NCBI RefSeq assembly: GCF_964213995.1
Contig: NW_027590142.1
Coordinates: 372,001 to 436,000 of the forward strand
Length of the DNA stretch: 64,000 bases
DNA from: Mustelus asterias
Lineage: Eukaryota
Direction of reading: 5' to 3'
Positions 27-56,479 of the stretch are shown in pieces; the stretch's first letter is position 1; the number at the start of each line of letters is the position of its first letter. The notes under the pieces were generated by a model, which was not told the DNA's origin, made no database searches, and saw only the letters and a list, made by a program, of their open reading frames with translations. The translations under genes and the position numbers were made by a program.

Positions 27-64
27 GGTTTTTGTATGAGGATGTCGCTGTGCTCAGCACTGTG
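27..64 (-). other. 22-spacer RSS on the 3' side of the D segment
   Basis: Minus-strand CACAGTG (58-64), 22-nt spacer (36-57), perfect ACAAAAACC (27-35). Confidence 0.95.
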
Positions 65-78
65 ACCCACTGCTGTAT
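65..78 (-). other. IGHD: Ig heavy-chain D segment (shark D1 type), coding ATACAGCAGTGGGT
   Basis: 14 nt flanked by two canonical RSSs. The 12/22 spacer configuration and the ...CAGTGGGT sequence resemble the first D of shark IgM clusters. Lies ~400 bp downstream of the VH. Confidence 0.93.
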
Positions 79-106
79 CACAGTGACACACACCCACACA
101 AAAACT
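79..106 (+). other. 12-RSS on the V-facing (5') side of the D segment
   Basis: CACAGTG 79-85, 12-nt spacer 86-97, ACAAAAACT 98-106. Confidence 0.95.
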
Positions 107-453
107 GCACTCACTCTGTTCAGTACTGCCGCTCAATATTCACTTCAAATGGACCATTAGTTCTGCTCTAATTTAAAATGCATGCAACTGTTTATATAAC
201 ACAATCTATCAGAAATATTAAAATGAGTAATATGTCCAGTGATGTACTTGCTGAAACTACAACAAATATAAAGTCAGTGAAAAGCTCACCCCGTTAGAGT
301 GGTGAGTTTGTTAAATTTTACTGTTAAATGCTTTCTTTGTTACTTCTTTTAAACACGATTATGGTTTGGTTCTGACCACTGTCGTTAATATTACATTTAA
401 AACAGATACTTACCTTCAGGTTATGATGGAAGTTGCTGAATTCCCTCTCGAGC

Positions 454-492
454 TGTTCTTGTTCGGGTGCAGCCCTGGTTCCTCTCGCTGTG
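454..492 (-). other. 23-RSS of the VH gene
   Basis: CACAGCG (486-492), 23-nt spacer (463-485), ACAAGAACA (454-462), directly after YYCAR. Confidence 0.92.
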
Positions 493-797
493 GTGTCTTG
501 CACAGTAATAGATGGCCGTGTCTTCAATCTTCAGGCTCTTCATGTCCAAAGCGAAGATGCTGCTTGAAAGGTCTTTGGACGCAGTAAATCGGCCCTGAAT
601 CCCGGAGGCGTAATATTTGTTGGATGAATCGTAGTAGCTAACGAGCCACTCCAGCCCCTGTCCGGGAACCTGCCGGATCCAACCCATCCAGGTGCTGCCA
701 AGAGTCAAGCCGCTGGTTTTACAGGTCAGTTTGAGGGAGCCTCCGGGAAGCCCGGTCTCTGCCTCTGGCTGAGTCAACACAACCTCCGACTGGACAC
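493..797 (-). CDS. IGHV: IgM-type heavy-chain V exon, intact
   Basis: Acceptor TTTTACAG then [30 protein letters not shown]...[14 protein letters not shown]...RFTASKD...[10 protein letters not shown]. Both Cys and the conserved Trp present; no stops; typical shark IgM VH frameworks. Confidence 0.96.
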
Positions 798-928
798 CTG
801 TAAAAATATATCAAAAACCCCGAGGATTAATCCTGGTGAAATGATTGCTGATTCTGCAACATTCCAGAGATAGAATAACACTGAGACAGTAGCAGTCAGA
901 CTTGCACAATAAAAATAAAACTACTCAC

Positions 929-974
929 CGGATAAGAAAGTCAGCAACAAACTGAGAGAAATCGCCGACCTCAT
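929..974 (-). CDS. IGHV: Leader exon of the VH gene (MRSAISLSLLLTFLS-G)
   Basis: ATG at 974, 46 nt, phase-1 donor G|GTGAGT; 131-bp intron (798-928) splices in frame to the V exon. Confidence 0.93.
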
Positions 975-1059
975 CCTTCTGGTGATTTGGGGGAAATGGT
1001 TGTGTCAGAAAATCAATGAACAAACCAACTCCGGGACTGTTGGATTCCGGTCCCAGTGA

Positions 1060-1115
1060 GCGGCATTTAAATACCCGGCAGAAGGGGGCGGCTTTCCAGG
1101 CGTCGCCTGTTGATT
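1060..1115 (-). promoter_or_regulatory. Probable VH core promoter (TATA-like TATTTAAAT in a GC-rich patch)
   Basis: TATA-like box ~95 nt upstream of the ATG; no ATGCAAAT octamer seen, consistent with octamer-less shark VH promoters. Confidence 0.45.
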
Positions 1116-2099
1116 CCCTGCTGGAGGCGGCGACTGGTTCCACGTCCCACCTTCCACACCCCAACAGAATGGACTCCGAGATTTACAATAGGTTAATATT
1201 AAAATGGACATTTTGTCTGTGTCGGGATATTTGTTTTGCTGAACATGTTCATTGTATTGTCTCCATTATTTCTGATGGTGAATTTGCAGTTCATCATTTC
1301 TTTATTTAAAAAAATTAATTCCATTGTAAATATGGTGTTTTTATTACCACGCCCCCAAGAAGAACACAAATCTAAAAATGCTGAAATAACATTTTTGGAA
1401 AATAAGGAGACCGTCAGTCTATTTTGCAATAATTCCGAATCTCTGTCACATTACAATAATAAAGCATAATTTATCAGAAGAATTGTTATCCATTTCTGTA
1501 ACTAAATGTGGGGGATGAACAAAGTGATTCTATTTACTGTGTGGATGGCTATCACTGTACAGTTTGGGTTTGGAGATGAGAGGAAACTCTCACACAATAC
1601 AATGTTTCTCCTTATATTTGTCAAACTACCTCAATCTCGAAGACAGCCCTTTGAAAATAATAAGAATCCCGCCTTCCTGATAATTAAACAGTGAGTTGAT
1701 TGTGAAACATAAAAATAAATCGACTTTTGACAGAGAAGTTAATGAATCGGAACGGACACGGAGATCATGAAAGTTCTTCTTCAGCATCTAAATAATTGCA
1801 GCTCACTCTATCGGCCACCGGCTGTCTAACATTCCCAGGTATTGCGAACACAGGATATCAGGGCTTTGCGGCACATTGCAAATATCACAAAAATAAATGT
1901 TTTATCTTCCATTGAATCAGGTTATGAACTGATCATTTCGCCACTCATTGGCAGCTATGAGAGGAACTCTTCAATAATGGAAATCAGATTATACTGTACA
2001 ATAGAACACGGTGCAAATCAGGTACAAGAGACGCTGCTGTTTAAATGAGATACAGAACTTTCAGAATATTCCAGTAATCCCCGCTGTTCATGTTAGTTT

Positions 2100-2408
2100 T
2101 ATAGAACATAGAACAGGACAGCACAGAACAGGCCCTTCGGCCCACGATGTTGTGCCGAGCTTTATCTGAAACCAAGAGCAAGCTATCCCACTCCCTATCA
2201 TCCTGGTGTGCTCCATGTGCCTATCCAATAACCGCTTAAATATTCCTAAAGTGTCTGACTCCACTATCACTGCAGGCAGTCCATTCCACACCCCAATCAC
2301 TCTCTGCGTAAAGAACCTACCTCTGATATCCTTCCTATATCTCCCACCATGAACCCTATAGTTATTCCCCCTTGTAATAGCTCCATCCACCCGAGGAAAT
2401 AGTCTTTG
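2100..2408 (-). mobile_element. CR1 LINE 3' fragment
   Basis: Encodes RGRFFTQRVIGVWNGLP; (TTCTATG)n tail. Confidence 0.88.
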
Positions 2409-3526
2409 ATGCTCTTTTAATATTATTTCGATCATTATTCTGATCTCAATTAACAGGAGAATTCGGACCACCAACATCTCTCTCTGTCATTTCATGAAGT
2501 GGTTAATAAACAGACTTTAATTATTGGAATGACATTTACTTGGAAGTTATACAAATGAAAAATTATCTGGTCACTTTATTGTTTTGCGATACTATTTACT
2601 CACATAATGAACAGGACACTGAATGATAATATTTGATTAGAATGATTACGATTTAAAATGTGTCTTTCTTGCGGGAATGAAACATTTATTGTTTAAATGG
2701 CTGAATCCCATTTTGTCCATTTAGGTTCACGCTAATCTGCCCCACACAGTGTTTGGCAGCAATCCAGCCTGCTGTCAAATGCTCAAAGTTATTGACAGGA
2801 AGCATCTGGGGGTGTTTGTGCAGTAGATCAAAGATCTGTTTTCTCAGTACTGACTGCTTGGCTGCAAGCCAACTTCAAACCTTTCACGTTGTCAATGAGG
2901 CCTATTTATAAACAAATCTACCCAGCAACAGTACGAGAAGCATTTCAATTTTTTAAAGTTGCAAATCTAGATGAATTTTGCCATCTCTAAAGAAATAAAA
3001 GTCATGCATCTTCTCTGGCACCCTGTTAGCAACAATGATTATTTTTCCAACACATCAGGATATTGTGATAGATGGATAGAAAGGATTACAAGACAACTGA
3101 GAGATGTCTCAGAGAGATGATACATGTACATGCATGTCTGTATTTTCTTTCCCTTTGTCTTTCCATGGGATGTTTGATTGGAAAGACCAGCACTTTTTGC
3201 CTGTCCAAATTCTCGTGAATTGACTGGTTTTCTAGGCCACTTCTAAAAATATTAAAGAGTAGGCTATTTTGCTGTCCACCTGGAGGCACATCCTTGGGAG
3301 ACCAGGTAGCGATGGCAGATTGGCTCCATTGGGGAATCAAAGATGTTCTAACGGTCGCCATTATTATCTATTCCAGATTTATGAATTGAATTCAAATTCT
3401 ACCAGCTGCAATGGCGCGATTTAAATCCCTGTCCTCACATCATTGTCCTGGGCCTCTGGGTCACTGGATCCATTAAATTAATATTATGTCACAATCTACG
3501 CAAACAATAATTGTTTTACTGTGTTG

Positions 3527-4005
3527 ATAGAGTCATAGAGTCATAGCGTCATAGAGGTTTACTGCATGGAAACAGGCCCTTCGGCCCAACTTGTCCAAGC
3601 CGCACTTTTTTAAAACCCCTGAGCTAATCCCAATTGCCCGCATTTGGCCAATATCCCTCTATGCCCATCGTACCCATGTAACTATCTAAATGCTTTTTAA
3701 AAGACAGAATTGTACCCGCCTCTACAACTACCTCTGGCAGCTTGTTCCAGACACTCACCACCCACTGTGTGAAAAAAATGCCCCTCTGGACACTTTTGTA
3801 TCTCTCCCCTCTCACCTTAAACCTATGACCTCTAGTTTTAGACTCCCCTACATTTGGGAAAAGATATTTACTATCTAGCTGATCTGTGCCCCTCATTATT
3901 TTAAAGATCTCTCTAAGATCACCCCAAAGCCTCCTACACTTCAGAGAAAAAAGTCCCTGTCTATCCAGCCTCTCCTTCTAACTCAGTCGAGCAAGTCCCG
4001 GTAGC
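3527..4005 (-). mobile_element. CR1 LINE 3' fragment
   Basis: TRGHRFKVRG...FFTQWVVSVWNKLP; (GACTCTAT)n tail. Confidence 0.88.
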
Positions 4006-7760: not shown

Positions 7761-7799
7761 GCGCCAAAATCTCATGAAATAATTTTAAACATATCATAT

Positions 7800-9550
7800 C
7801 CCTGCTTATATTCAACTCGCCTCTGACCCTGTCTGTATTGCACCAGGCTCTACCTGGATCACATTCCATGAGGTCCTATCTAAGTTTTTTTCCTGAACTC
7901 GGCTCAATTTGAGGTGTTCATATACGAGGCACAGGCCCTGTTAATATTATAATTTCTAAGTTATAGCTGCACTGAGCCAGTTCTCTTCTAATCTGACAAG
8001 AGGCCGTGTCTTAATTCTTACTGCCTCAGGACATTTAACACTGTATACTAAACTGGAAATACTGTCTTCATGCATTACACATGGTACTGTCACATTTATT
8101 ATGCTAATAGTTCATTAGATTTTAATAGTTTGGGTCTTGTTTAAGTTAATGCTTCACCAGTCCATGTATTTGATTATTTAAGACTGTCATGTCTCAGTTT
8201 CATTGTACGTTGCAATACGTCCTAATAGCTGCATTGTCCGAATCACAGTGTGTATCAGTCTAGGTCCTGCATCAACAATTACCACGAATAAAATGGGCTC
8301 TGTCTCAGTTTATATCATTCTAGGTACTGTATCAGTAATTATCACTAACACACTGGACTCTGTCTCGGTTTAAACCTGTCTCAGTCATGTATCAGTAGAC
8401 ATTACTAATGCACTTGGCTCCATCTCAGTTCAGACAAGTCTCGCTCCAGTATCATTAATTACTCGGCTCTGTCTCAATTCATATCACACAAGCTCCTATA
8501 TCCAGTGGAACTGCGCTAGACACTGTCTCCGTTTGCTTTTCCTTGACAATGTCATAAGTATTTTTTTAATGTTTCTATCATGGGATGTGGGTGTTATTGG
8601 AAATACCAGTATTTGATATTTGACCATCCCCACATGGCACTCGGCACTAACTCATTTCTATTTTATTGGATCAGGCCCCTGTTTATATTAAAATACAGTC
8701 TGGCTCTGTTACTCTGCTAGACCAGAACTCAGTTTATATTGCACTGGACACTCTCTCTGGATATTTAATATTTGATACTGACCCTGTATATATTTCACTA
8801 GACTGTGTCAGTGTTATTCCTGCACTTAACTATGTCTCTGTTTGAGTTATGTCTGTATTACTACACGGTTCTGCGAGAAGAAGAGATAACATATTGGGAT
8901 AAAAACATTGCTTTCAGGCAGGATCCAGAAACGGGCAGTATTGGATCGACAGTATTTGGTTGGTGCAGTCTTGGAGGGCCGACGGGCCTTTTCCTGTGCT
9001 GTAATTTTCTTTCTTTTTTGTTCTTTGTTGACAGTGCATGCTGCACAGGGCTTGGTATCCATTTTCAATGCAGTCAGCAGAAGTAGACTTCAGATATCTC
9101 TTCTTCTTTTCCAGTGCCCAAAACCTCATAGAGTTTGCACATGCAGAAAGATGCAGAGAATTGTGTTCCCCCAACCAACTTCATCATTACTGGCATTGAC
9201 CGGTGCAGTAAAAACTGAGACTATGTCCAATGCAATATAAACGTGGACACGATCAATTGCAGAAATGAGATTGCATCTAGTTTGATACAAGCAGAGACAG
9301 ACCTAAATTAATGTAAACGGAGACAACGTCTCGCTTAATATAAACAGAAACATGGTGATGTATAATATAAACAGGGTCAGCCTCTAGTTTAGTATAAACA
9401 GATAAAACATCCAGTTTAATATGAGTAGAGACAGGCAATATAGAATTCTACGTGCAATATAAAAAGAGTTAAGGTCTAGTGAAAAATAAACAAAGGCATG
9501 GCCTCATAATATAAGCTGACACAGGGGAAATTTACTGTAATATAAAGGGA
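7800..9550. repeat. Degenerate ~27-29-bp minisatellite arrays in opposite orientations around a unique core
   Basis: Unit resembling TCTAGTGTAATATAAACAGAGACACGG on + at ~9210-9550 and its reverse complement at ~7800-8850. Confidence 0.6.
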
Positions 9551-9584
9551 CTGCTTCAGTCCCCATGAAATTTGTAGAGACGGC

Positions 9585-10120: not shown

Positions 10121-10121
10121 C

Positions 10122-13027: not shown

Positions 13028-13550
13028 GGAATCTTCGGTTTTCATGTTATTTCCAAAGAGACGACGTTGTTTGAAGTATAAAAGCAAATTACTGCAGATT
13101 CTGGAATTGAAACCAAAAGAATAAATGCTGGAAAATCTCAGCAGGCCTGGTAATATCTGTAAGGAGAGCAAAGAGCTGACGTTTCGAGTCCAGATGGCCC
13201 TTTGAAAAAGCTTTGACAAAGGGTAATCTGTGCTCGAAACGTCAGCTCTTCTCTCTCCTTACAGATGATGCCAGACTTGCTGAGATTTTCCAGCATTTTC
13301 TCTTTACGTTGTTTTAAGTGTCTTTGGGCGGAGTAAATTGATTCTGAATCCCTGGGGCGGAGGAATTGTAGGTTGATCCAAATCTATCCTACTGAAAAAC
13401 ACACTATAAACGTTGTCCAGGGACCTGTGGACCCGAACCATCCAGTTGCTGCCAATATTCGACGCGTTGGCCTTACAGCTCAGTCTCAGGGAGCCTCAGA
13501 GACGCCCGGTTTCTGCCTCTGGCTGAGTGAACATAACCTCCGATTCGATA
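13028..13550 (-). pseudogene. IGHV: IgM-type VH pseudogene (paralog of the 493-797 VH)
   Basis: GGGAGCCTC...CCCGGTTTCTGCCTCTGGCTGAGT...AACCTCCGA matches FR1; FR3 remnant (SKD.SNNVVSLE..MKTEDS) is split by a 228-bp insertion; frameshifts; YYC, RSS and leader not found. Confidence 0.88.
13078..13305. mobile_element. Penelope-like palindromic insertion in the pseudo-VH FR3
   Basis: Hairpin centred near AAAGCTTT (~13210); 14-bp target duplication ACGTTGTTT(G/T)AAGT at 13064-13077 and 13306-13319. Confidence 0.8.
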
Positions 13551-13567
13551 CTTGTAAAAATATAAAG

Positions 13568-13902
13568 AAAACATTGAAAACGAAAGGCCACACACCCCGA
13601 ACATACTCTCTCACCTTTCTACATCGGGAACAAGATACAAAAGTATTAGGACACGGACAAACCGACTAAAAAATCGCTTCTTTCCTGCTGCAATCAGACT
13701 TTTGAATGGACCTTCCTCGCATTAAGTTGATATTTCTCTACACCCTAGCTATGACTACAACACTACATTCTGCACTCGCTCGTTTCCATCTCGATGTACG
13801 GTATGCTTTCTCTGTATAGTGCGCAAGAAACACTAATTTTCATTGTGTACTAATATGCACGCCAATAATAAATCAAATGAAACCAAACCAAATCAAATCA
13901 AA
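13568..13902 (+). mobile_element. Rex1/Babar-type LINE 3' end in the pseudo-VH intron
   Basis: Encodes SGTRYKSIRTRTNRLKNRFFPAAIRLLN; (AAATC)n tail; VH-intron homology resumes at ~13905. Confidence 0.75.
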
Positions 13903-14299
13903 TAAATCAAAAACCCTGAGGATTATTCCCGATGAATTGATTGCTGACACTGCGACATTCCAGAGTTAGGCTAACACTGAGGCAGCAACAGTGAGATCCA
14001 TTGTCTTGTCTCTGCCAGTCCAAGAGGTGAAATTGCATTTGAGCATCTGTGATAGAAAATAAAAACAATTTCATTGTAAATTAAGTCCCTTCATTTATCC
14101 ACCCCTCCACAAGGGAATAGACATACAGAAGATGACATTAACTTATCAGGGTAAAGATGTCAATCTGATTTGCAATCATTCTGTGTCTCTAACACTTTGC
14201 ATCAAAAATATAATTCATTTAAGGAATTATTATCGATTTATTGTATTTCTGGTGTGGGTAACTATCATTGTAACTTGGGACTGGATATAAGAAGAAAGG

Positions 14300-18458: not shown

Positions 18459-18872
18459 TGCATTATCATCGCTGCATTAACGAGGTATATAAATGCTCCG
18501 GCTGGAAAATCAGGTCAGCCTGCTGTGAGTAACCCACCTCCAGACTCCCCAAACCTGTGCACCAACTACACGACATAAGTCAGGAGAGTAAAAGGGTTCT
18601 TTCCACTTGCTTGAATAAGTGGAGCTCAAACAACATTCAAGAATCTTCATACCATTCAGGAATAAGCAGCCGGCTTGACTGGCATAGAATTTGAAAATGC
18701 TCACTCCCTCCTCCACAGAGAGCAGTATGATGTACCATTTACAAGTTTCTCTTCCGAAACTCACCAAGACTCCTTAGGCAGCAACTTCCAACCACACGAC
18801 AGTTACCATCTGGAAGGACAGGAGTAACAGTTACCAGGGAATATCACCTATAAATTCCCCTCCTAATCAGTC

Positions 18873-21800
18873 ATAGAACATAGAACATAGAACATTACAG
18901 CGCAGAACAGGCCCTTCGGCCCACGATGTTGCACCGACCAGTTAAAAAAACAAAACTGTGACCCTCCAACCTAAACCAATTTCTTTTCGTCCATGAACCT
19001 ATCTACGGATCTCTTAAACGCCCCCAAACTAGGCGCATTTACAACTGATGCTGGCAGGGCATTCCAATCCCTCACCACCCTCTGGGTAAAGAACCTACCC
19101 CTGACATCGGTTCTATAACTACCCCCCCTCAATTTAAAGCCATGCCCCCTCGTGCTGGATTTCTCCATCAGAGGAAAAAGGCTATCACTATCCACCCTAT
19201 CTAAACCTCTAATCATCTTATATGTTTCAATAAGATCCCCTCTTAGCCGCCGCCTTTCCAGCGAAAACAATCCCAAATCCCTCAGCCTCTCCTCATAGGA
19301 TCTCCCCTCCATACCAGGCAACATCCTGGTAAACCTCCTCTGCACCCTCTCCAAAGCCTCCACATCCTTCCTGTAATGTGGGGACCAGAACTGCACACAG
19401 TACTCCAAGTGCGGCCGCACCAGAGTTGTGTACAGTTGCAACATAACGCTACGACTCCTAAATTCAATCCCCCTACCAATAAACGCCAAGACACCATATG
19501 CCTTCTTAACAACCTTATCTACTTGATTCCCAACTTTCAGGGATCTATGCACACATACACCTAGATCCCTCTGCTCCTCCACACTATTCAAAGTCCTCCC
19601 GTTAGCCCTATACTCAACACATCTGTTATTCCTACCAAAGTGAATTACCTCACACTTCTCCGCATTAAACTCCATCCGCCACCTCTCGGCCCAACTTTGC
19701 AACCTGTCTAAGTCTTCCTGCAAACTACGACACCCTTCCTCACTGTCTACCACACCACCGACTTTGGTGTCATCAGCAAATTTGCTAATCCACCCAACTA
19801 TACCCTCATCCAGATCATTAATAAATATTACAAACAGCAGTGGCCCCAAAACAGATCCCTGAGGTACACCACTTGTAACCGCACTCCATGATGAATATTT
19901 ACTATCAACCACCACCCTCTGTTTCCTATCCGCTAGCCAATTCCTGATCCAATTTCCTAGATCACCCCCAATCCCATACATCTGCATTTTCTGCAGAAGC
20001 CTACCATGGTAGTGCACTAGAAAGCTTTAGATTGGCTAAGAGGGAGTTGAAGAGCGAGCTTAGAAGGGCTAAAAGGGGACATGAGAAGACTTTGGCGGAT
20101 AGGGTTAAAGAGAATCCTAAGGCGTTCTATAGGTATGTCAAGAACAGAAGGTTGGTTAGGGCAAGTTTAGGGCCAGTTATAGATGGCAGAGGGAAGTTAT
20201 GTGTGGAACCGGAGGAGATTGGTGAAGCATTGAACCAATATTTCTCTTCGGTGTTCACGCAAGGGGACATGAATATAGCTGAGGAGGACACTGGGTTGCA
20301 AGGGAGTAGAATAGACAGTATTACAGTTGATAAGGAGGATGTGCAGGATATTCTGGAGGGTCTGAAAATAGATAAATCCCCTGGTCCGGATGGGATTTAT
20401 CCAAGGATTCTCTGGGAGGCAAGAGAAGTGATTGCAGAGCCTCTGGCTCTGATCTTCAGGTCGTCGTTGGCCTCTGGTATAGTACCAGAAGATTGGAGGT
20501 TAGCGAATGTTGTCCCATTGTTTAAGAAGGGGAACAGAGACTTCCCCGGGAATTATAGACCGGTGAGTCTCACTTCTGTTGTCGGCAAGATGTTGGAAAA
20601 AATTATAAGGGATAGGATTTATAGTTATTTGGAGAGTAATGAATTGATAGGTGATAGTCAGCATGGTTTTGTGGCAGGTAGGTCGTGCCTTACTAACCTT
20701 ATTGAGTTTTTTGAGAAAGTGACCAAGGAGGTGGATGGGGGCAAGGCAGTGGACGTGGTATATATGGATTTTAGTAAGGCGTTTGATAAGGTTCACCATG
20801 GTAGGCTTCTGCAGAAAATGCAGATGTATGGGATTGGGGGTGATCTAGGAAATTGGATCAGGAATTGGCTAGCGGATAGGAAACAGAGGGTGGTGGTTGA
20901 TAGTAAATATTCATCATGGAGTGCGGTTACAAGTGGTGTACCTCAGGGATCTGTTTTGGGGCCACTGCTGTTTGTAATATTTATTAATGATCTGGATGAG
21001 GGTATAGTTGGGTGGATTAGCAAATTTGCTGATGACACCAAAGTCGGTGGTGTGGTAGACAGTGAGGAAGGGTGTCGTAGTTTGCAGGAAGACTTAGACA
21101 GGTTGCAAAGTTGGGCCGAGAGGTGGCGGATGGAGTTTAATGCGGAGAAGTGTGAGGTAATTCACTTTGGTAGGAATAACAGATGTGTTGAGTATAGGGC
21201 TAACGGGAGGACTTTGAATAGTGTGGAGGAGCAGAGGGATCTAGGTGTATGTGTGCATAGATCCCTGAAAGTTGGGAATCAAGTAGATAAGGTTGTTAAG
21301 AAGGCATATGGTGTCTTGGCGTTTATTGGTAGGGGGATTGAATTTAGGAGTCGTAGCGTTATGTTGCAACTGTACACAACTCTGGTGCGGCCGCACTTGG
21401 AGTACTGTGTGCAGTTCTGGTCCCCACATTACAGGAAGGATGTGGAGGCTTTGGAGAGGGTGCAGAGGAGGTTTACCAGGATGTTGCCTGGTATGGAGGG
21501 GAGATCCTATGAGGAGAGGCTGAGGGATTTGGGATTGTTTTCGCTGGAAAGGCGGCGGCTAAGAGGGGATCTTATTGAAACATATAAGATGATTAGAGGT
21601 TTAGATAGGGTGGATAGTGATAGCCTTTTTCCTCTGATGGAGAAATCCAGCACGAGGGGGCATGGCTTTAAATTGAGGGGGGGTAGTTATAGAACCGATG
21701 TCAGGGGTAGGTTCTTTACCCAGAGGGTGGTGAGGGATTGGAATGCCCTGCCAGCATCAGTAGTAAATGCGCCTAGTTTGGGGGCGTTTAAGAGATCCGT

Positions 21801-23031
21801 AGATAGGTTCATGGACGAAAAGAAATTGGTTTAGGTTGGAGGGTCACAGTTTTTTTTTAACTGGTCGGTGCAACATCGTGGGCCGAAGGGCCTGTTCTGC
21901 GCTGTAATGTTCTATGTTCTATGTTCTATGGTGAACCTTATCAAACGCCTTACTAAAATCCATATATACCACGTCCACTGCCTTGCCCCCATCCACCTCC
22001 TTGGTCACTTTCTCAAAAAACTCAATAAGGTTAGTAAGGCACGACCTACCTGCCACAAAACCATGCTGACTATCACCTATCAATTCATTACTCTCCAAAT
22101 AACTATAAATCCTATCCCTTATAATTTTTTCCAACATCTTGCCGACAACAGAAGTGAGACTCACCGGTCTATAATTCCCGGGGAAGTCTCTGTTCCCCTT
22201 CTTAAACAATGGGACAACATTCGCTAACCTCCAATCTTCTGGTACTATACCAGAGGCCAACGACGACCTGAAGATCAGAGCCAGAGGCTCTGCAATCACT
22301 TCTCTTGCCTCCCAGAGAATCCTTGGATAAATCCCATCCGCACCAGGGGATTTATCTATTTTCAGACCCTCCAGAATATCCTGCACATCCTCCTTATCAA
22401 CTGTAATACTGTCTATTCTACTCCCCTGCAACCCAGTGTCCTCCTCAGCTATATTCATGTCCCCTTGCGTGAACACCGAAGAGAAATATTGGTTCAATGC
22501 TTCACCAATCTCCTCCGGTTCCACACATAACTTCCCTCTGCCATCTATAACTGGCCCTAAACTTGCCCTAACCAACCTTCTGTTCTTGACATACCTATAG
22601 AACGCCTTAGGATTCTCTTTAACCCTATCCGCCAAAGTCTTCTCATGTCCCCTTTTAGCCCTTCTAAGCTCGCTCTTCAACTCCCTCTTAGCCAATCTAA
22701 AGCTTTCTAGTGCACTACCCGAGTGCTCACGTCTCATCCGAACATAAGCCTCCTTTTTCTTTTTAACCAACAAAGAAACTTTTTTGGTGCACCACGGTTC
22801 CCTAACCCTACCAATTCCTCCTTGCCTGACAGGGACATACCTATCACAGACTCGCAGTAGCTGCTCCTTGAAAAAACTCCACATGTCGGACGTTCCCAGT
22901 CCCTGTAATCTCCTAGTCCAACCTATGTTTCCTAATTCTCTCCTAATAGCCTCATAATTCCAATATAGCCTCACCTCTAGTTGGCCTGTCTACATACTGA
23001 GTCAAAAAACCTTCCTGCACGCTTTGAACAA
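18873..23031 (-). mobile_element. Young 5'-truncated CR1, split at ATGGT by a copy of the same family
   Basis: Pieces 21928-23031 and 18873-20010 join to give ...KAFDKVHH|GRLLQKMQ...; nearly identical to 43617-45995 apart from a ~150-bp internal deletion at ~22960. Confidence 0.92.
20008..21930 (+). mobile_element. Young 5'-truncated CR1 nested in opposite orientation (600-aa open RT)
   Basis: ORF 20032-21834 with YRPVSLTS, GVPQGSVLGP, FADD; (TTCTATG)n tail; ATGGT duplicated at 20006-20010 and 21928-21932. Confidence 0.94.
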
Positions 23032-34977: not shown

Positions 34978-36832
34978 TCCATAAACTCAATGCAAGTTCT
35001 TTCCAAATGTTAACATTAGAAAATGCAAGATTTGATATGTTGAGAGCTCTGAGATTAATGTGATTGTATTCATTCCGCTGCATGTTGTCTTAACTTGTCC
35101 AGTTTAAGTAGATTAAATCATCAATCAAATTGACATTCGGTGGAATACCAATCTGTTCAAATATGTTTCATTTATTGTGACATCAGAATACTCTGAACAA
35201 ATTTTTGATTAGAATGTATCTCTTTATTTGAATTAAATAGCATCTGCTCTAATGGGTATTCACAAAGCTTCTATTCATTTTGAACCAATTGTCAATATAC
35301 TTAAATTAAACAGTTATTTTGAGTTGAAACGAATCAATAAGTGACTGTTTATCTGGTTTTGCTGCCGTGATACTTCATTCTAACCAGTGAGGTGTTTGTG
35401 TAAGTAAACAGTGAAATAGCAATCCCAGAATAAATTTATTGATTGAGGAAAACACAACAAAAACTTCCCCATCAACACAGCACAGAAATAGACAAACATG
35501 CATATAAATCAACGGATTCCAGTCGTGAATGTTTTTTGGACATTTTTCTTCATCTGTTATACGCGCAAAAAAGGCTATGATCATCTCTGTGTTCAAAAGT
35601 AGGAAAGATTCCCTCTAATCTCGAAATATAATGCCACGGCAAATATATTTGTGGAGATTTCCTGTGCTTTATCTCTCCGTGTTTTTCTCCTGTCTGATTC
35701 TGTCTCTTGCTTTGTCTCTCCACGACAGGTCATTGTCAACAACATCAAGTCAAACTCCAGCTAATGTATTCTCTCAGCCATATTAATAGGCTTCTAACTA
35801 AATGGGTCTAATTCAATTAATTGGACAATATCGAGAGAGCTTTTCTCCAAAATGTATATTGGTCATTCCTTGGATCTAACTCGTCCTGTCCCGGCCACCC
35901 AATTGTTTCAATGGACAGCGTAGAGAGAGTTTTACTGTTTCTAAACAGCCTACATTTTCTGGGAATGTATGATTCGGACAGTGGAGATGGAGATACACTT
36001 CGTATCTATCCCGTGCTACACCTGCCTTGGGAGTGTTTAATGTTGCAATGTGGAGGGAGCTTAACATTCGCTACCTAAACACATGCTACACCTGTCCTTG
36101 GAATGTTTGATGGGACACTAGGCCCTGTCTCTATAATGCACTCGTCTGTGATCCTGGTCTGCTGATGTTAAATTAACTAATCTCTGCGTCAGTTTATATT
36201 AAAGAACGTTGTGTCTCTGTTCATATTACACTAGATGTGCTCTCTGTTTATACTAAACTAGATGCTGTCTCTGTTTATATTACACGTCACCATATCTCTG
36301 TTTACATTAAGCTCGACAGTGACTCTGCTTCTATTAATGTCGACCTGTCTCTGTACTAAACTGGATGCGGTCTTAGTTCTGCACTTGACTGTGTCCACGT
36401 TCATTTTATATTGGGCACGGACTCAGTTATTACTGCGCCAGACAAGGTGCAATAATGTGAAAAGTGGCTGGGGGAACACATTTCTCTGCATCCTCCGACA
36501 GACACAACTCTGGGATGGAGACTGGTCTTGGACACTGGAAGAAGTGATATCTGAAATCCAATTCTGCTGACTGCATTGCAAGTAGATATCAACCCTGCGC
36601 TGGATGCACTGTCGATCCAATAGTTTCTGTTTCAGGATCCTGCTGAATACAGATGTTTTTAGCACAGCATATTCATGTATTGTATTATCTCTCCTCCTCA
36701 CAGAACCGTAGAGTAATGCGACCTTAATTCGAACAGAGGCATAATCTAGTGCATTGATAACAGTGACCTGGTCACATTAAATGTAGGCAGAGTCAGGATC
36801 AAATAAACACATACATGGACTGATGCAGCATT

Positions 36833-42327: not shown

Positions 42328-43041
42328 ATGACTCCTAGAAATGAGGCTTGGGTCAATGCCAGGAGGAGGGGTAAGAAGCAATCGGGAAGACAATCCCCTG
42401 GGGCGGATCCCCTCCATAATAGGTTTTCGGTGCTGGAGGCTACAGTTGAGGAGGAATCAACTGAGCAGAGAGAGCAGATCTCTGGGGGTGAGCCGAGTGA
42501 GAAAGCTCAGGTGGTTAGGGGCTGTAAAAGACTGGGCCTTGTGATTGGGGACTCCACAATTAAGGGGACAGATAGGAGGGTCGGAACTAAAGGTAGGGAC
42601 TCAGGGTTGGTGTGTTGCCTACCAGGGGCTGGGGTCCGGGATGTGTCTGACAGGGTATTCAGGACTCTTAGGGGGGAGGGAGATAAACCACAAGTTATTG
42701 TACATGTGGGGACACACGACATAGGGAGGATAGGGGAAGGGGATATTAGGCTGGGATTTATGGAGTTGGGGTGGAAACTAAAGGCCAAGACTGACAGAGT
42801 GGTTATCTCTGGACTCTTGCCTGTACCACGGGATAGTTTAGAGAGGAATAGGGAGAGGGAAGGTTTGAATTCATGGCTGAGGGGATGGTGCAGGAGGGAG
42901 GGGTTCAGGTACTTAAGCAATTGGGGCTCGTACTGGGGAAGGTGTGACCTCTATGAGAAGGATGGTCTACACCTTAATCAGAAGGGGACCAATATCCTGG
43001 GGGGTAAATTTGCTAAGGCCATGCAGGGAGGTTTAAACTGA
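42328..43041 (+). CDS. CR1 ORF1 C-terminal SGNH esterase domain
   Basis: LVIGDS, CCLPGA, IVHVGTHD, DGLHLN blocks. Confidence 0.88.
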   Translation: MTPRNEAWVNARRRGKKQSGRQSPGADPLHNRFSVLEATVEEESTEQREQISGGEPSEKAQVVRGCKRLGLVIGDSTIKGTDRRVGTKGRDSGLVCCLPGAGVRDVSDRVFRTLRGEGDKPQVIVHVGTHDIGRIGEGDIRLGFMELGWKLKAKTDRVVISGLLPVPRDSLERNREREGLNSWLRGWCRREGFRYLSNWGSYWGRCDLYEKDGLHLNQKGTNILGGKFAKAMQGGLN

Positions 43042-43069
43042 TTCGGGGGGGGGGGAGGGATCCTGAGTA

Positions 43070-45907
43070 GTGGGGCTGAAAGTGAGGGATGCATGGATGG
43101 GGACTGCAATGCACGGCATTGCAGAGGTGGAGCAGGGTTTGAAATGTGTATACTTCAATGCCAGGAGTATTCGCAATAAAGTGGGTGAACTTGCAGCGTG
43201 GATCAGTACCTGGGACTTCGATGTTGTGGCTATTTCAGAGACATGGATAGAGCAGGGGCAGGAATGGATGCTGCAGGTCCCGGGGTTCAAATGTTTTAGT
43301 CGAAGTAGGGAAGGAGGTAGAAGAGGGGGAGGGGTAGCATTATTGGTCAGAGATTGTATCACAGTGTCAGAGAGGAGGTTTGATGAGGACTTATCTGTTG
43401 AGGTAGTATGGGCGGAGATTAGAAATAGGAGAGGAGAGGTCACCCTGTTGGGAGTCTTTTATAGACCTCCTAAAAGTTCTAGAGAGGTTGAGGAAAGGAT
43501 TGCGGAGTCAATCCTGCTTAGGAGTGAAAGTAATAGGGCAATTGTTATGGGGGATTTTAACTTGACTAATATTGACTGGAATTGTTATAGCTCTAGCTCG
43601 TTAGAGGGGTCAGTTTTTGTTCAAAGCGTGCAGGAAGGTTTTTTGACTCAGTATGTAGACAGGCCAACTAGAGGTGAGGCTCTATTGGATCTGGTGCTGG
43701 GAAATGAGCCAGACCAGGTGCTAGACTTGGAAGTTGGTGTGCATTTTGGTGATAGTGACCACAATTCGGTTACGTTCACCTTAGTGATGGAAAGGGATAG
43801 GCATGAACCTCGGGCCAGTGGTTTTAGCTGGGGGAAGGGTAATTATGAGGCTATTAGGAGAGAATTAGGAAACATAGGTTGGACTAGGAGATTACAGGGA
43901 CTGGGAACGTCCGACATGTGGAGTTTTTTCAAGGAGCAGCTACTGCGAGTCTGTGATAGGTATGTCCCTGTCAGGCAAGGAGGAATTGGTAGGGCTAGGG
44001 AACCGTGGTGCACCAAAAAAGTTTCTTTGTTGGTTAAAAAGAAAAAGGAGGCTTATGTTCGGATGAGACGTGAGCACTCGGGTAGTGCACTAGAAAGCTT
44101 TAGATTGGCTAAGAGGGAGTTGAAGAGCGAGCTTAGAAGGGCTAAAAGGGGACATGAGAAGACTTTGGCGGATAGGGTTAAAGAGAATCCTAAGGCGTTC
44201 TATAGGTATGTCAAGAACAGAAGGTTGGTTAGGGCAAGTTTAGGGCCAGTTATAGATGGCAGAGGGAAGTTATGTGTGGAACCGGAGGAGATTGGTGAAG
44301 CATTGAACCAATATTTCTCTTCGGTGTTCACGCAAGGGGACATGAATATAGCTGAGGAGGACACTGGGTTGCAGGGGAGTAGAATAGACAGTATTACAGT
44401 TGATAAGGAGGATGTGCAGGATATTCTGGAGGGTCTGAAAATAGATAAATCCCCTGGTGCGGATGGGATTTATCCAAGGATTCTCTGGGAGGCAAGAGAA
44501 GTGATTGCAGAGCCTCTGGCTCTGATCTTCAGGTCGTCGTTGGCCTCTGGTATAGTACCAGAAGATTGGAGGTTAGCGAATGTTGTCCCATTGTTTAAGA
44601 AGGGGAACAGAGACTTCCCCGGGAATTATAGACCGGTGAGTCTCACTTCTGTTGTCGGCAAGATGTTGGAAAAAATTATAAGGGATAGGATTTATAGTTA
44701 TTTGGAGAGTAATGAATTGATAGGTGATAGTCAGCATGGTTTTGTGGCAGGTAGGTCGTGCCTTACTAACCTTATTGAGTTTTTTGAGAAAGTGACCAAG
44801 GAGGTGGATGGGGGCAAGGCAGTGGACGTGGTATATATGGATTTTAGTAAGGCGTTTGATAAGGTTCACCATGGTAGGCTTCTGCAGAAAATGCAGATGT
44901 ATGGGATTGGGGGTGATCTAGGAAATTGGATCAGGAATTGGCTAGCGGATAGGAAACAGAGGGTGGTGGTTGATAGTAAATATTCATCATGGAGTGCGGT
45001 TACAAGTGGTGTACCTCAGGGATCTGTTTTGGGGCCACTGCTGTTTGTAATATTTATTAATGATCTGGATGAGGGTATAGTTGGGTGGATTAGCAAATTT
45101 GCTGATGACACCAAAGTCGGTGGTGTGGTAGACAGTGAGGAAGGGTGTCGTAGTTTGCAGGAAGACTTAGACAGGTTGCAAAGTTGGGCCGAGAGGTGGC
45201 GGATGGAGTTTAATGCGGAGAAGTGTGAGGTAATTCACTTTGGTAGGAATAACAGATGTGTTGAGTATAGGGCTAACGGGAGGACTTTGAATAGTGTGGA
45301 GGAGCAGAGGGATCTAGGTGTATGTGTGCATAGATCCCTGAAAGTTGGGAATCAAGTAGATAAGGTTGTTAAGAAGGCATATGGTGTCTTGGCGTTTATT
45401 GGTAGGGGGATTGAATTTAGGAGTCGTAGCGTTATGTTGCAACTGTACACAACTCTGGTGCGGCCGCACTTGGAGTACTGTGTGCAGTTCTGGTCCCCAC
45501 ATTACAGGAAGGATGTGGAGGCTTTGGAGAGGGTGCAGAGGAGGTTTACCAGGATGTTGCCTGGTATGGAGGGGAGATCCTATGAGGAGAGGCTGAGGGA
45601 TTTGGGATTGTTTTCGCTGGAAAGGCGGCGGCTAAGAGGGGATCTTATTGAAACATATAAGATGATTAGAGGTTTAGATAGGGTGGATAGTGATAGCCTT
45701 TTTCCTCTGATGGAGAAATCCAGCACGAGGGGGCATGGCTTTAAATTGAGGGGGGGTAGTTATAGAACCGATGTCAGGGGTAGGTTCTTTACCCAGAGGG
45801 TGGTGAGGGATTGGAATGCCCTGCCAGCATCAGTTGTAAATGCGCCTAGTTTGGGGGCGTTTAAGAGATCCGTAGATAGGTTCATGGACGAAAAGAAATT
45901 GGTTTAG
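43070..45907 (+). CDS. CR1 ORF2 (APE endonuclease plus reverse transcriptase), uninterrupted
   Basis: YFNARS, ISETW, YRPP, MGDFN, SDH; YRPVSLTS, DFSKAFD, GVPQGSVLGP, FADD. Confidence 0.96.
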   Translation: MGLKVRDAWMGTAMHGIAEVEQGLKCVYFNARSIRNKVGELAAWISTWDFDVVAISETWIEQGQEWMLQVPGFKCFSRSREGGRRGGGVALLVRDCITVSERRFDEDLSVEVVWAEIRNRRGEVTLLGVFYRPPKSSREVEERIAESILLRSESNRAIVMGDFNLTNIDWNCYSSSSLEGSVFVQSVQEGFLTQYVDRPTRGEALLDLVLGNEPDQVLDLEVGVHFGDSDHNSVTFTLVMERDRHEPRASGFSWGKGNYEAIRRELGNIGWTRRLQGLGTSDMWSFFKEQLLRVCDRYVPVRQGGIGRAREPWCTKKVSLLVKKKKEAYVRMRREHSGSALESFRLAKRELKSELRRAKRGHEKTLADRVKENPKAFYRYVKNRRLVRASLGPVIDGRGKLCVEPEEIGEALNQYFSSVFTQGDMNIAEEDTGLQGSRIDSITVDKEDVQDILEGLKIDKSPGADGIYPRILWEAREVIAEPLALIFRSSLASGIVPEDWRLANVVPLFKKGNRDFPGNYRPVSLTSVVGKMLEKIIRDRIYSYLESNELIGDSQHGFVAGRSCLTNLIEFFEKVTKEVDGGKAVDVVYMDFSKAFDKVHHGRLLQKMQMYGIGGDLGNWIRNWLADRKQRVVVDSKYSSWSAVTSGVPQGSVLGPLLFVIFINDLDEGIVGWISKFADDTKVGGVVDSEEGCRSLQEDLDRLQSWAERWRMEFNAEKCEVIHFGRNNRCVEYRANGRTLNSVEEQRDLGVCVHRSLKVGNQVDKVVKKAYGVLAFIGRGIEFRSRSVMLQLYTTLVRPHLEYCVQFWSPHYRKDVEALERVQRRFTRMLPGMEGRSYEERLRDLGLFSLERRRLRGDLIETYKMIRGLDRVDSDSLFPLMEKSSTRGHGFKLRGGSYRTDVRGRFFTQRVVRDWNALPASVVNAPSLGAFKRSVDRFMDEKKLV

Positions 45908-46024
45908 GTTGGAGGGTCACAGTTTTTTTTTAACTGGTCGGTGCAACATCGTGGGCCGAAGGGCCTGTTCTGCGCTGTAATGTTCTATGTTCTATACAGC
46001 TTCTATCAGCTCGATTTTGTTTTC

Positions 46025-46097
46025 AGGCTCCAGTGAGACTTGAACTCTCGACCCCTAGTTTACAAAGCCAGTGCTTAAACCACTGAGCCATGGAGCC
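46025..46097 (-). tRNA. tRNA-Thr(TGT), probable pseudogene
   Basis: GGCTCCATGGCTCAGTGGTTTAAGCACTGGCTTTGTAAACTAGGGGTCGAGAGTTCAAGTCTCACTGGAGCCT; perfect acceptor stem, one mismatch each in D, anticodon and T stems; no oligo-T terminator. Confidence 0.8.
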
Positions 46098-50830: not shown

Positions 50831-50862
50831 TGATGCTTTTATATACGTGGCAGGTTCCAGCA

Positions 50863-53800: not shown

Positions 53801-54496
53801 ATGACTTTTGGACGCCCAATAAGAGAAATACCCTCACAAACCATCTCTGTTACTCAGCATAAAACTCAAGCAAGTTAATTATACACGATTTGACCTGAAC
53901 AAATGCATTCTGGCTGAATTTGTCACGAAACATATAAGTGGGATGATTGCTGCAGTGATTAAGAGAGTGAAGATATAAATGCTAAATCTGCTGACGACAC
54001 AAAGATAGATCGGAAAATTGAGCATTGGCGAGGGCATTGGGCATGTCTCGAATATTGTGTGCACTACTTGTCTCCTTATCTTAAGAAAGATGTTAATGCA
54101 TTAGAAAAAGTTCAGAGGAGTTTCACTAAACTATTACCAGCTATGAGCGGGTCATCTTATGAGGAAAGAATGGTACCGTCAGGTTTGTACCCACGGGAGT
54201 TTAGAAGAGTAAGAGGCAAATTGGCTGAAACCTTCAAAACCCTAAGTGGTGCGAACAGTGTGGATGTTGAGCGGATGTTTCCTCTTGTCCAATGTTGTAG
54301 CTGTCCTGGATATTCTCTGAGTGCAGATATCTCAGATCTTGGTTCTGCGTCTGTTACCACTGCTGTACTGTCCACGGGAGGGCGCTCTTTGATCACTTCC
54401 CGAACATCAGAGTCTCCTTTTGCAGAAAGTGACAATTTGTTGATACGAAAATGGGCGGAGAAAATAAATCCCATCCAATCACATTGCATCTTCCCG

Positions 54497-54920
54497 GTTC
54501 TTTTGATTCAACCTTTAACTTCAATACATTTATTTAACTCAAATGTCCTCATTCTGAACTGAATATCTCTGAAATAGAGAACATTGAATTGCAAGCATGA
54601 CTGACCAACAAAAGAGCGCGAGTCACTGGGAAATACACATCCCATGGTACCTTTTTGAAATTGACCGCAGTCAGCTTTCAAACAAAAGCAAATATCTTTC
54701 AAGGGAAGAGATTTAAGAATGATCTGTTAGTTATACTTGATCCTTCTTTATTCTGTGTGTGAAACATTCTGGCGCTTAAATATCTTTCATCTACAGGAGG
54801 CCCAGCAAGTCCGCATTGATTCTCCATTTCCTCATCTACCTGAACGGTATTTCCTACATCTTTATTAGGAAGAACAATTTTAAAAATAAGCTTCGAAGCA
54901 ATGTGTGCCATTTCCTCTAT
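54497..54920 (-). repeat. Inverted repeat of ~59061-59470
   Basis: Shared CCAGAATGTTTCACACACAGAATAAAG..GATCAAGTATAA.TAACAGATCATTCT and flanks. Confidence 0.85.
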
Positions 54921-55043
54921 TGACCGGTCGAAAAACAATGGGAATTTCCCCATCCGTGAGCTGCGGCTGTCTGGCCGCGCGGTGTATTACTGCGGACTGA
55001 GAGACTCAGAGACAGAAACCAGAGGGAGCCCCGCACCAAAACA
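54921..55043 (+). pseudogene. Truncated TCR alpha/delta-type V relic (FR3 end plus degenerate 23-RSS)
   Basis: DRSKNNGNFPIRELRLSGRAVYYCGLR, then CTCAGAG (55005-55011), 23 nt, ACCAAAACA (55035-55043). Confidence 0.75.
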
Positions 55044-55889
55044 CTGCCGCAAAGTCACAGGGTGAACGGAGCAGAGAATGGTAATAATATTGAACTTTTT
55101 TAATTCGGCATGATTCACTCTGCAGTGCCTCCATACATTTTCAGTGTTTTCTGATATTCACAACAGGGGAGACGATGGCCTGGGGGTATTATCGCTAGAC
55201 GATTAATCCAGAAGCTCAGCTAAAGTTCTGCAGACCCATTTCAATAAAAAAAATCTACAATTAAAAATCCAGTTCACTAAAGTACTTTAGGGAAGGAAAA
55301 CTGCATTCCTCTGGCCTACATGTGACACCAGAGCCACTGCGATGTGGTTGATTCTCAACTAGAGATGGACAATAAATGCTGGCCAACCAGTGGCACCCAT
55401 GTCCCACACACAGAACAACATTTCACTGGATTCACGATTGAAACTGTCCTGAAAGTAAGGCTAATGGACGTATTAAAAAAAACAATGACAGAACTATTTA
55501 GCCTTCCATAGCTTCCGGGTCACACTAAGAAAATAAGCGGATTTTGTGGAATGTCAATTATTGAGCATGTTGAATCAATAGCTTTATGGAGCATAATCTC
55601 ATCAAGAGCTATGCTGATAGCGCGGGAAAGTGGCGTTCAGGCTTATCAGCCCTGATCTAACTGAATGACAAAACAGAATCGAAGGGCAGAATGGCCTACA
55701 GCTGTTCCCACGTTCCTACACCCCATTTGTCCATTTTCTTCCCGACGTCAATCGTTAAATCTCGAAGTTTTCTCTGTAAGGATAGTGATTGCCATCCAGC
55801 TCACTGTGTGTCTGTTTACTGTCTGTTATCTCACCACCTGGGTGTCACGCAGCTCCGCTGGGGACAGAAGGGACGGAGCTGAGAACATC

Positions 55890-55945
55890 CGGAGACAGGA
55901 AGCTGATTATTGAGGGCAACGATTAGACTTAATGAGATCAAACAC
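55890..55945 (+). promoter_or_regulatory. Candidate TCR V promoter (Ets-like CAGGAAG; CRE/decamer-like AATGAGATCA)
   Basis: Motifs ~40-85 nt upstream of the leader ATG; resemble known TCR V promoter elements. Confidence 0.4.
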
Positions 55946-55977
55946 CCAGCTCCCCTTCTACAGAGCGGACAGCAACA

Positions 55978-56023
55978 ATGTGGCTGCTCGGCGTGTGTGT
56001 AATGTGGGGACCGTTCCTGACAG
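55978..56023 (+). CDS. Leader exon of the TCR V (MWLLGVCVMWGPFLT-D)
   Basis: 46 nt, phase-1 donor G|GTAATT; 110-bp intron to TTTTCAG acceptor; in frame. Confidence 0.88.
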
Positions 56024-56133
56024 GTAATTATGTGCAAAATACAGTGCACCGTTTCTCACATTTCCCAAGCTTGGTTCCAGACCATTCTTTCATGGTCCGC
56101 CCGTCTGAACATTTTCTGTTTTGTTATTTTCAG

Positions 56134-56440
56134 ACCTGAGTCATGGAGATTCTGTCACCCAGTCGCTCTCATCAGATGTTAAGAGAGAAGGCGAGATCGT
56201 GACTTTAACCTGTGACTATCAAACCACAGAGAGCGACTATAGGCTGTACTGGTACCGACAACATCCAGACACACAGCCCGTGTTTATAGTGCGGAAAGAT
56301 CCTGATGGTTATGAAGATAAAGCAGATGTTTTTAAAAGTCGGTTCTATGTAGATCTCCAGGCTTCGAACAAATTCATCAGTGTAAATATATTCGACCTGA
56401 GCCAGACTGATGCTGCCGCTTATTACTGCGCGTTCAGACG
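56134..56440 (+). CDS. TRAV/DV: TCR alpha/delta-type V exon, intact
   Basis: DLSHG-DSVTQ...VTLTCDYQT...LYWYRQHPDTQPVFI...SRF...DAAAYYCAFR; no stops. Confidence 0.92.
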
Positions 56441-56479
56441 CACAGTGATAGAAAGAAGACCCAGCTTCGTGCAAAAACC
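56441..56479 (+). other. 23-RSS of the TCR V
   Basis: CACAGTG, 23-nt spacer, GCAAAAACC. Confidence 0.95.

Follow-up and report, generated by a model that had tools for sequence, protein, structure and literature searches.

A 64-kb window of shark DNA probably spans the join between the 5′ end of an IgH minicluster and a TCR alpha/delta V block

Published layouts of the D1 segment place an RSS with a 12-bp spacer on its 5′ side and one with a 22- or 23-bp spacer on its 3′ side. V segments lying behind the C exons of the TCR beta and delta loci join by inversion. Chimeric IgHV-TCR-delta chains and TAILV were reportedly described in the nurse shark, by Criscitiello in 2010 and by Deiss in 2019; to our knowledge, TAILV and VH-delta segments are without a D of their own. 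The accessible part of Malecek 2008 (PMC2435157) places the segments of a nurse shark cluster ∼400 bp apart, with Cmu1 6.3 to 6.8 kb away. The accessible text of Flajnik et al. 2025 (PMC12227049) reports that IgM, IgW, and IgNAR show tight linkage with TCR alpha/delta in four elasmobranchs, that IgH clusters have some TCR alpha/delta-type V exons between them, and that VH-type V genes occur within the TCR-delta loci of sharks and other vertebrates. An earlier note on the DNA analyzed here had held that the principle of such an arrangement was already described, and the 2025 paper strengthens that statement.

The window, the whole stretch of 64,000 bases that was analyzed, contains 0 N runs. 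A six-frame motif scan identified two V-type domains in it, both at the positions that the earlier note had given. The first belongs to a VH-D unit at the left edge, read on the minus strand:

929..974, minus strand: VH leader exon, 46 nt (translation MRSAISLSLLLTFLS)
798..928, minus strand: VH leader intron, GT..AG, phase 1 (sequence reading)
493..797, minus strand: open V exon of the VH; Cys, Trp, and YYCAR conserved (motif scan, Pfam, PDB)
454..492, minus strand: VH RSS with a 23-bp spacer (heptamer CACAGCG, nonamer ACAAGAACA; score 13/16)
79..106, minus strand: 5′ RSS of the D, 12-bp spacer (heptamer CACAGTG, nonamer ACAAAAACT; score 15/16)
65..78, minus strand: coding part of the D, 14 nt, flanked by the 12- and 22-bp-spacer RSSs and read as a putative D1 of an IgH minicluster
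27..64, minus strand: 3′ RSS of the D, 22-bp spacer (heptamer CACAGTG, nonamer ACAAAAACC; score 16/16)

The V exon, 797 to 493, has 0 stops and a CDR1 of GLTLGSTW. It matches the Pfam V-set (E 1.4e-14), and its PDB matches are antibody VH domains. Identity is 77% with a Chiloscyllium VH model and 75% with Heterodontus HV01 (P0002), whose start agrees with the leader at 13 of 15 residues by hand count. Likeness to HV01, which we take to be of IgM origin, suggests that the isotype is probably IgM rather than IgW. The VH RSS follows the V exon without a gap and departs from the consensus by one base in the heptamer and two in the nonamer; the distance from the V exon end to the D start is 414 bp. 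No canonical octamer was found near the VH, the two matches in the window both sitting elsewhere. Flanked 5′ by a 12-RSS and 3′ by a 22-RSS, the D would be suited, as a D1, to joining a 23-RSS VH and a 12-RSS D2.

In DNA contigs of three organisms, the VH-D region was covered in 30 of 30 bins, by 88 to 184 contigs per run at 90 to 99% likeness. Because of this coverage the VH-D unit is, judged by contig matches, a member of a multi-copy cluster family in which V, RSS, and D have stayed linked. The VH is indistinguishable in any feature from ordinary cluster VHs. We also considered the unit as a TAILV or VH-delta segment, that is, a VH-like V without Ig D, J, and C of its own, and rejected this assignment; the VH has its own D with cluster-type RSSs.

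The second V-type domain is read on the plus strand, near the right end of the window:

55978..56023, plus strand: leader exon of a TCR alpha/delta-type V, 46 nt, GT donor present (translation MWLLGVCVMWGPFLT)
56024..56133, plus strand: leader intron of the TCR V, 110 nt, phase 1 (sequence reading)
56134..56440, plus strand: TCR alpha/delta-type V exon, open (motif scan, Pfam, PDB)
56441..56479, plus strand: TCR V RSS with a 23-bp spacer (CACAGTG / GCAAAAACC; score 15/16)

This exon also matches the Pfam V-set (E 4.7e-14). Among single-domain PDB entries, TCR alpha chains match it best (E 8e-18), followed by TCR delta chains at E 1.7e-13 or weaker; antibody constructs ranked among its PDB matches via summed multi-domain scores. 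Its identity to shark TCR V sequences was 58 to 63%; the V of P0046 stood at 62% and a germline V model from Heterodontus at 63%. P0046 is a TCR-delta transcript, since its J-C part is the same as that in the NAR-TCR chain P0052. A tblastn comparison of the VH with the TCR-type V within the window gave no cross-match at E values up to 10. These comparisons clearly point to a V of TCR alpha/delta type at 56 kb, nearer to the V genes of TCR alpha/delta than to those of Ig.

The pair is divergent: the 5′ ends face each other, and the ATGs lie ∼55.0 kb apart. The exact consensus RSS pattern, which the 3′ RSS of the D matches in full, appeared in 0 of 100 shuffles. Three RSSs scored at least 15/16, versus 0.01 expected, and 0 of 200 first-order Markov simulations reached three at that score. 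At a score of at least 13 there were 7, versus 2.4 expected, so that the weak sites at 8244, 14845, and 14932 are at chance level, and the VH RSS, with its score of 13, owes its credibility solely to its position next to the V exon. The earlier note had described a complete VH with its D on the minus strand and a complete TCR-type V on the plus strand, back to back and 55 kb apart, with good RSSs throughout. The leader, open V exon, 23-RSS, and D with 12/22 RSSs of the former were all found, as were the leader, open V exon, and near-consensus 23-RSS of the latter. The observation holds, with "back to back" meaning a divergent pair: both V genes are intact, and their RSSs go far past chance expectation.

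The reading that we favor, at a probability of about 0.78, is that the window spans the join between a TCR alpha/delta V block and the 5′ end of an ordinary IgH minicluster whose isotype is probably IgM. Segments of an IgH cluster and a TCR alpha/delta V are linked in the assembly sequence within one gap-free 64-kb window. Reading leftwards at the left edge, the minicluster would start with the leader, the VH with its 23-RSS, and D1 with its 12- and 22-RSSs; beyond base 1, a D2 (12/12) and a JH (23-RSS) would be expected within ∼2 kb, and Cmu exons 6 to 10 kb downstream. From 56 kb rightwards, the V would be a conventional TCR alpha/delta V of a block that extends further rightwards, a direction inferred for the locus from how this one V is oriented; no TCR D, J, or C segment was found within the 64-kb window. 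In B-lineage cells, RAG would join VH, D1, D2, and JH inside the cluster, all by deletion and according to the 12/23 rule, and in T-lineage cells the TCR V would be joined to downstream D-delta or J-alpha segments. The second alternative of the earlier note, in which an IgM cluster borders on TCR V segments, fits the VH's own D with 12/22 RSSs, the 414-bp spacing, and the TCR alpha/delta type of the V. The adjacency exemplifies the elasmobranch Ig/TCR alpha-delta "antigen receptor complex" described in 2025 and does not amount to a special hybrid gene; PSMB5, with which the complex is syntenic, would lie beyond the 64 kb.

The TCR V may instead be part of a small island of TCR-type Vs scattered between IgH clusters, not the edge of the main array, and possibly rarely or never used; we regard this as unlikely. 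No second TCR V was found in the window, the 7.5 kb on its right-hand side included, and TCR alpha/delta-type V exons between IgH clusters are reported in the accessible text of PMC12227049. Against this reading, the V is fully intact and its 23-RSS is near consensus.

More doubtful is the idea that IgM miniclusters flanking TCR V blocks serve two lineages, the VH or a VH-D1 join being recombined in thymocytes by RAG with TCR D-delta or J-delta, and so with C-delta, by inversion across the V block, in addition to its use in its own B-cell cluster; the outcome would be chimeric IgHV-TCR-delta chains as in the nurse shark. Because the VH and the TCR V are divergent, such a join must be inversional, and so must the possible cis rearrangement of VH(-D) to TCR-delta D/J/C that the earlier note had given as its first alternative. 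The RSS types would permit it, the 23-RSS of the VH and the 3′ 22-RSS of D1 each being pairable with a 12-RSS, and the two genes share one contig, 55 kb apart. As far as the available portions of these sources go, chimeric IgM or IgW V with TCR D-J-C is on record (PMC5931798, PMC6795676), IgH clusters are widely RAG-cut in nurse shark thymocytes (PMC2435157), and proximity is argued to ease such joins (PMC12227049). However, inversion would be needed over a distance that is probably great, and two joints in DNA contigs (117-385 and 150-416) lie away from RSS borders. Of 22 listed runs, 0 are recorded as RNA, and none contains half of the words looked for. Were it true, sharks would make their "trans-rearranged" IgHV-TCR-delta chains in cis, by inversion out of B-cell clusters, and the 12/22 D1 would act as an adaptor in IgHV-TCR-delta joins.

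No hallmark of a constant region, additional V domain, or additional strong RSS was found in the 55-kb spacer, which holds CR1-like LINE copies and one decayed VH pseudogene:

13320..14239, minus strand: decayed VH pseudogene, in the orientation of the intact VH (blastn, tblastn)
18872..22959, no strand assigned: nested LINE insertion (self-blastn, 99.6 to 99.9% identity)
42328..45995, plus strand: full-length CR1-like LINE with open ORF1 (42328-43041) and ORF2 (43070-45907)

The pseudogene retains portions of the V exon and of the leader intron, the latter split by ∼330 bp, along with an upstream piece. It matches the intact VH region in three blocks, at 73%, 83.5%, and 71% identity by blastn, and gave a tblastn E of 7e-11; an in-frame stop occurs at codon 18, the frame is lost past FR2, and neither an RSS nor a D was found with it at 13320..14239. 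In the full-length LINE, ORF2 has Pfam matches to Exo_endo_phos and RVT_1, and ORF1 has a GDSL-like match of 32.4 bits, slightly below the cut-off of 32.9. The nested element is a 5′-truncated plus-strand LINE (20008-21922), with a tail of (ATGTTCT)n, inserted within a minus-strand copy of the same family. ATGG is duplicated at the junctions on both sides of it, and the inverted structure is a clean nested insertion.

An assembly misjoin would have its classic sites in the near-identical LINE copies (99.6 to 99.9%) that fill the spacer. It is nevertheless highly improbable: the window has no N runs, the sole suspicious structure is the clean insertion with duplicated ATGG, and adjacency of a like kind is published, as the accessible text of PMC12227049 has it. 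The spacer looks natural. Least credible of all is a VH-D unit dedicated to TCR use, of the TAILV or VH-delta kind and not followed by a Cmu; TCR-delta loci containing VH-type V genes are reported for sharks and other vertebrates (PMC12227049, in its accessible text), but this VH has a D, a 12/22 RSS layout, and a spacing all of cluster type, and its multi-copy family retains V, RSS, and D as a unit.

By itself the window establishes no new principle, the Ig-beside-TCR layout being already published for sharks and rays. It provides the base-level anatomy (orientation, RSS types, and spacing) of one Ig/TCR junction, of a sort that the 2025 paper draws as boxes only. If such junctions were mapped genome-wide, one could ask which source gives rise to the IgHV-TCR-delta chimeras of sharks, ordinary clusters through cis inversion or dedicated VH-D-J-delta loci.

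Set against known systems, the VH-D unit most resembles the IgM minicluster (VH-D1-D2-JH-Cmu) of nurse and horn sharks, which likewise has a leader, an intron, and a VH with a 23-RSS, then a D ∼400 bp downstream with a 5′ 12-RSS and a 3′ 22/23-RSS. Horn and bamboo shark VHs are 75 to 77% identical to the VH of the window, and, as with elasmobranch IgM miniclusters, the unit belongs to a multi-copy family. Unlike those miniclusters, the window shows only V and the putative D1, its VH heptamer has one non-consensus base, and a dead VH lies 12.8 kb upstream. As in the nurse shark chimeric IgHV-TCR-delta and TAILV system, a VH bearing a 23-RSS is placed where TCR segments are within reach, whereas the VH of the window, unlike TAILV and VH-delta segments, carries a cluster-type D1. 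A join of this VH to TCR D-delta would be inversional, as for the inverted V segments of the TCR beta and delta loci; those, however, lie downstream of C in a TCR locus, and this VH is part of an Ig cluster on the upstream side of the V block. Finally, the accessible text on the Ig-TCR alpha/delta linkage, or AgRC (PMC12227049), is without orientations, whereas the pair in the window is divergent; in both, TCR-type V exons adjoin IgH clusters, and an IgH cluster and a TCR-type V share one DNA stretch, tens of kilobases apart.

A six-frame scan of the 64,000 bases for V-domain hallmarks identified two V-type domains, and both lie where the earlier note had placed its two V-type genes. The first is an antibody heavy-chain V (VH) at the left edge, accompanied by a D segment (D1), with the following features:

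974-929, minus strand: VH leader exon, translating as MRSAISLSLLLTFLS, followed by a GT..AG phase-1 intron
797-493, minus strand: VH V exon, open, with CDR1 GLTLGSTW and terminal YYCAR(H)
492-454, minus strand: VH recombination signal (RSS) with a 23-bp spacer, CACAGCG / ACAAGAACA, flush with the end of the V exon
106-79, minus strand: D1 5' RSS, 12-bp spacer
78-65, minus strand: D1 segment, 14 nt, 414 bp past the VH V exon
64-27, minus strand: D1 3' RSS, 22-bp spacer, full consensus match

The CDR1 quoted in the earlier note is thus present in an open exon. This exon matches the Pfam V-set family (E = 1.4e-14) and 11,711 PDB sequences at E ≤1e-5, the best 60 of the 11,711 being antibody, nanobody, or scFv constructs. 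A large protein collection gave 52 candidates, of which 45 matched at E 1e-10, and the closest were elasmobranch VH sequences; over the V exon alone, a Chiloscyllium punctatum model (P0003) is 77% identical, and HV01 of Heterodontus francisci (P0002; "Ig heavy chain V region"), which we take to come from an IgM cluster, is 75% identical. A Rhincodon typus model of the same description (P0010) continues past YYCAR into a J-like WGQ..VTVT stretch, which points either to a VDJ gene joined in the germline or to splicing across segments in the gene model. A TATA-like TATTTAAA lies ∼95 bp upstream of the VH ATG; no exact promoter octamer was found near VH, both matches in the window (n = 2) sitting elsewhere.

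The exact consensus RSS pattern was recovered in 0 of 100 shuffled sequences. Three sites score at least 15/16, against 0.01 expected, and none of 200 first-order Markov simulations gave three. At 13/16 or above, seven sites are observed and 2.4 expected, so three additional weak sites (8244, 14845, and 14932) are at chance level and were rejected as further segments. Site 8244 lies inside a tandem repeat at 8246-8372 (a 60-bp unit in 2.1 copies), the source of one such chance match; a second tandem repeat, at 36192-36282, has a 27-bp unit in 3.4 copies. A score of 13 alone would not make the VH RSS credible; its place flush with the V exon's end does. The VH heptamer (486-492) reads CACAGCG, and in the Chiloscyllium model P0003 the read-through is ..HSER.., which fits the consensus CACAGTG; the VH RSS of the cluster at the left edge may be slightly weakened. 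The 12/22 layout around D1 is that of published shark IgH clusters, and it gives D1 the signals it needs to join a 23-RSS VH at one end and a 12-RSS D2 at the other.

The second V-type domain belongs to a TCR alpha/delta-type V on the opposite strand:

55978-56023, plus strand: TCR V leader exon, translating as MWLLGVCVMWGPFLT, followed by a 110-nt intron
56134-56440, plus strand: TCR V exon, open
56441-56479, plus strand: TCR V RSS, 23-bp spacer

This exon also matches Pfam V-set (E = 4.7e-14). The top PDB row is a multi-domain antibody construct of which no single stretch passes; among single-domain matches, TCR alpha chains rank first (E = 7.9e-18 to 6e-16), and TCR delta chains come next, from E = 1.7e-13. 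Of 51 candidates from the protein collection, only P0046 matched at E ≤1e-5, with 62% identity; over the V exon alone, a germline V model from Heterodontus (P0053) is 63% identical and a chain from the whale shark (P0048) 58%. The V-J-C transcript P0046 shares its J-C part with P0052, in which this part is preceded by a NAR-type V and then a supporting V, which identifies P0052 as a NAR-TCR chain. Since NAR-TCR is described as a TCR-delta chain in PMC6795676, and the J-C part is common to both, P0046 is a TCR-delta transcript. V segments of the nurse shark are common to delta and alpha cDNAs, according to PMC5931798, so "TCR alpha/delta V" is the right label for this gene. A blastn search of the window found no second copy of the TCR V region.

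The two V genes lie in divergent orientation, their 5' ends opposed and ∼55.0 kb apart, and the window contains no runs of N. The DNA between them is rich in LINE sequence: matches to the window's own intact LINE proteins (tblastn) cover 17,352 of 54,800 bases. Its recognizable features are as follows:

13320-14239, minus strand: decayed VH pseudogene, oriented like the intact VH and 12.8 kb upstream of it
42328-45995, plus strand: full-length CR1-like LINE, with ORF1 (42328-43041) and ORF2 (43070-45907) both open
46025-46097, minus strand: tRNA-like element scoring 48.3 bits against Rfam RF00005, 30 bp past the full-length LINE's 3' end

ORF2 of the LINE matches Exo_endo_phos and RVT_1 (endonuclease and reverse transcriptase), and ORF1 is GDSL-like, just below the Pfam cutoff. 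Three near-identical pieces (99.6 to 99.9%) in alternating orientation occupy 18872-22959, and at their junctions a 5'-truncated plus-strand copy lies within a minus-strand copy, with ATGG duplicated on both sides and an (ATGTTCT)n tail on the inserted copy. An assembly fold-back or misassembly at these inverted copies (18.9 to 23.0 kb) was rejected, because the duplication and the tail mark a natural nested insertion. The nested truncated pair is 99.6 to 99.9% identical to the full-length copy; the family is very young and probably still active. The tRNA-like element, the single Rfam match, may be the head of a tRNA-derived SINE or a tRNA gene.

The pseudogene comprises three blocks 71 to 83.5% identical to the intact VH region, with an in-frame stop at codon 18, the frame gone past FR2, and an insert of ∼330 bp in the leader intron. 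No RSS or D was found at 13320-14239; the element may be a relic, either of a duplicated V or of a cluster that was lost. Searches of the window by tblastn and blastn found no second V besides this pseudogene, none of the eight non-LINE spacer ORFs tested matched a Pfam family, and a crude test for the C1-set hallmark motif found none in the window's open stretches of at least 60 amino acids.

Twenty-two sequencing runs are listed for positions 1-1100; not one is recorded as RNA or contains as much as half of the sampled words. Contigs from four runs (X1, X2, X4, and X7), representing three organisms, were placed on 1-1500. Each run yielded 88 to 184 short contigs that gave depth in every one of the 30 bins, with 90 to 99% likeness and many substitutions. 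The contigs cover exons and noncoding DNA alike, and at such likeness they represent DNA of a multicopy family in related sharks, with no bearing on RNA or on whether the 55 kb is contiguous; such a family fits what is expected of clusters. Two joints in the contigs, 117 to 385 and 150 to 416, were rejected as V-D joins made by RAG, since they lie off the RSS borders (V end at 493, D start at 78), and they are attributed to paralogue length variants. Contigs of X1 and X7 skip ∼266 bp at 118-384, between V and D1, which implies a shorter V-D1 spacer in paralogous or orthologous clusters; the window's cluster may carry an insertion there.

Together, VH and D1 fit an ordinary IgH minicluster of which they would form the 5' end, which supports the earlier note's proposal of a boundary between an IgM cluster and the TCR locus. 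The V-to-D gap of 414 bp agrees with the nurse shark IgH clusters of Malecek et al. (PMC2435157), described there as having segments ∼400 bp apart, Cmu1 at 6.3 to 6.8 kb, and joining within the cluster. On this model, RAG would join VH-D1-D2-JH leftwards by deletion, and the TCR V would be joined to D-delta or J-alpha segments on its right.

The alternative is a hybrid receptor, in which the VH 23-RSS or the D1 22-RSS would pair with the 12-RSS of a TCR D-delta to give a VH-TCR-delta join. Judged from the layout of the signals, this is mechanically possible, and chimeric chains of an IgM or IgW V with TCR D-J-C are on record in PMC5931798 and PMC6795676; nurse shark thymocytes, according to PMC2435157, rearrange IgH clusters heavily but incompletely, without transcripts. 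However, because the VH and TCR V genes lie in divergent orientation, the two paired RSSs would point the same way and a join in cis would require inversion of the intervening DNA, and the window shows no feature that distinguishes this VH.

The minicluster beside a TCR V remains the better fit, and it has a close precedent. Beyond the paper of Flajnik et al. (PMC12227049; Sci Adv 2025), whose table S1, with the coordinates, lay outside the search, a literature search found none that maps Ig/TCR junctions at base level. In the text of that 2025 paper, elasmobranch IgH isotype clusters do not intermingle, and the word "orientation" has 0 occurrences, whereas the pair described here is divergent. 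The layout itself is the arrangement set out in the same text, with TCR-type V exons between IgH clusters, and the locus is a further instance of this known Ig/TCR arrangement, with no new principle.
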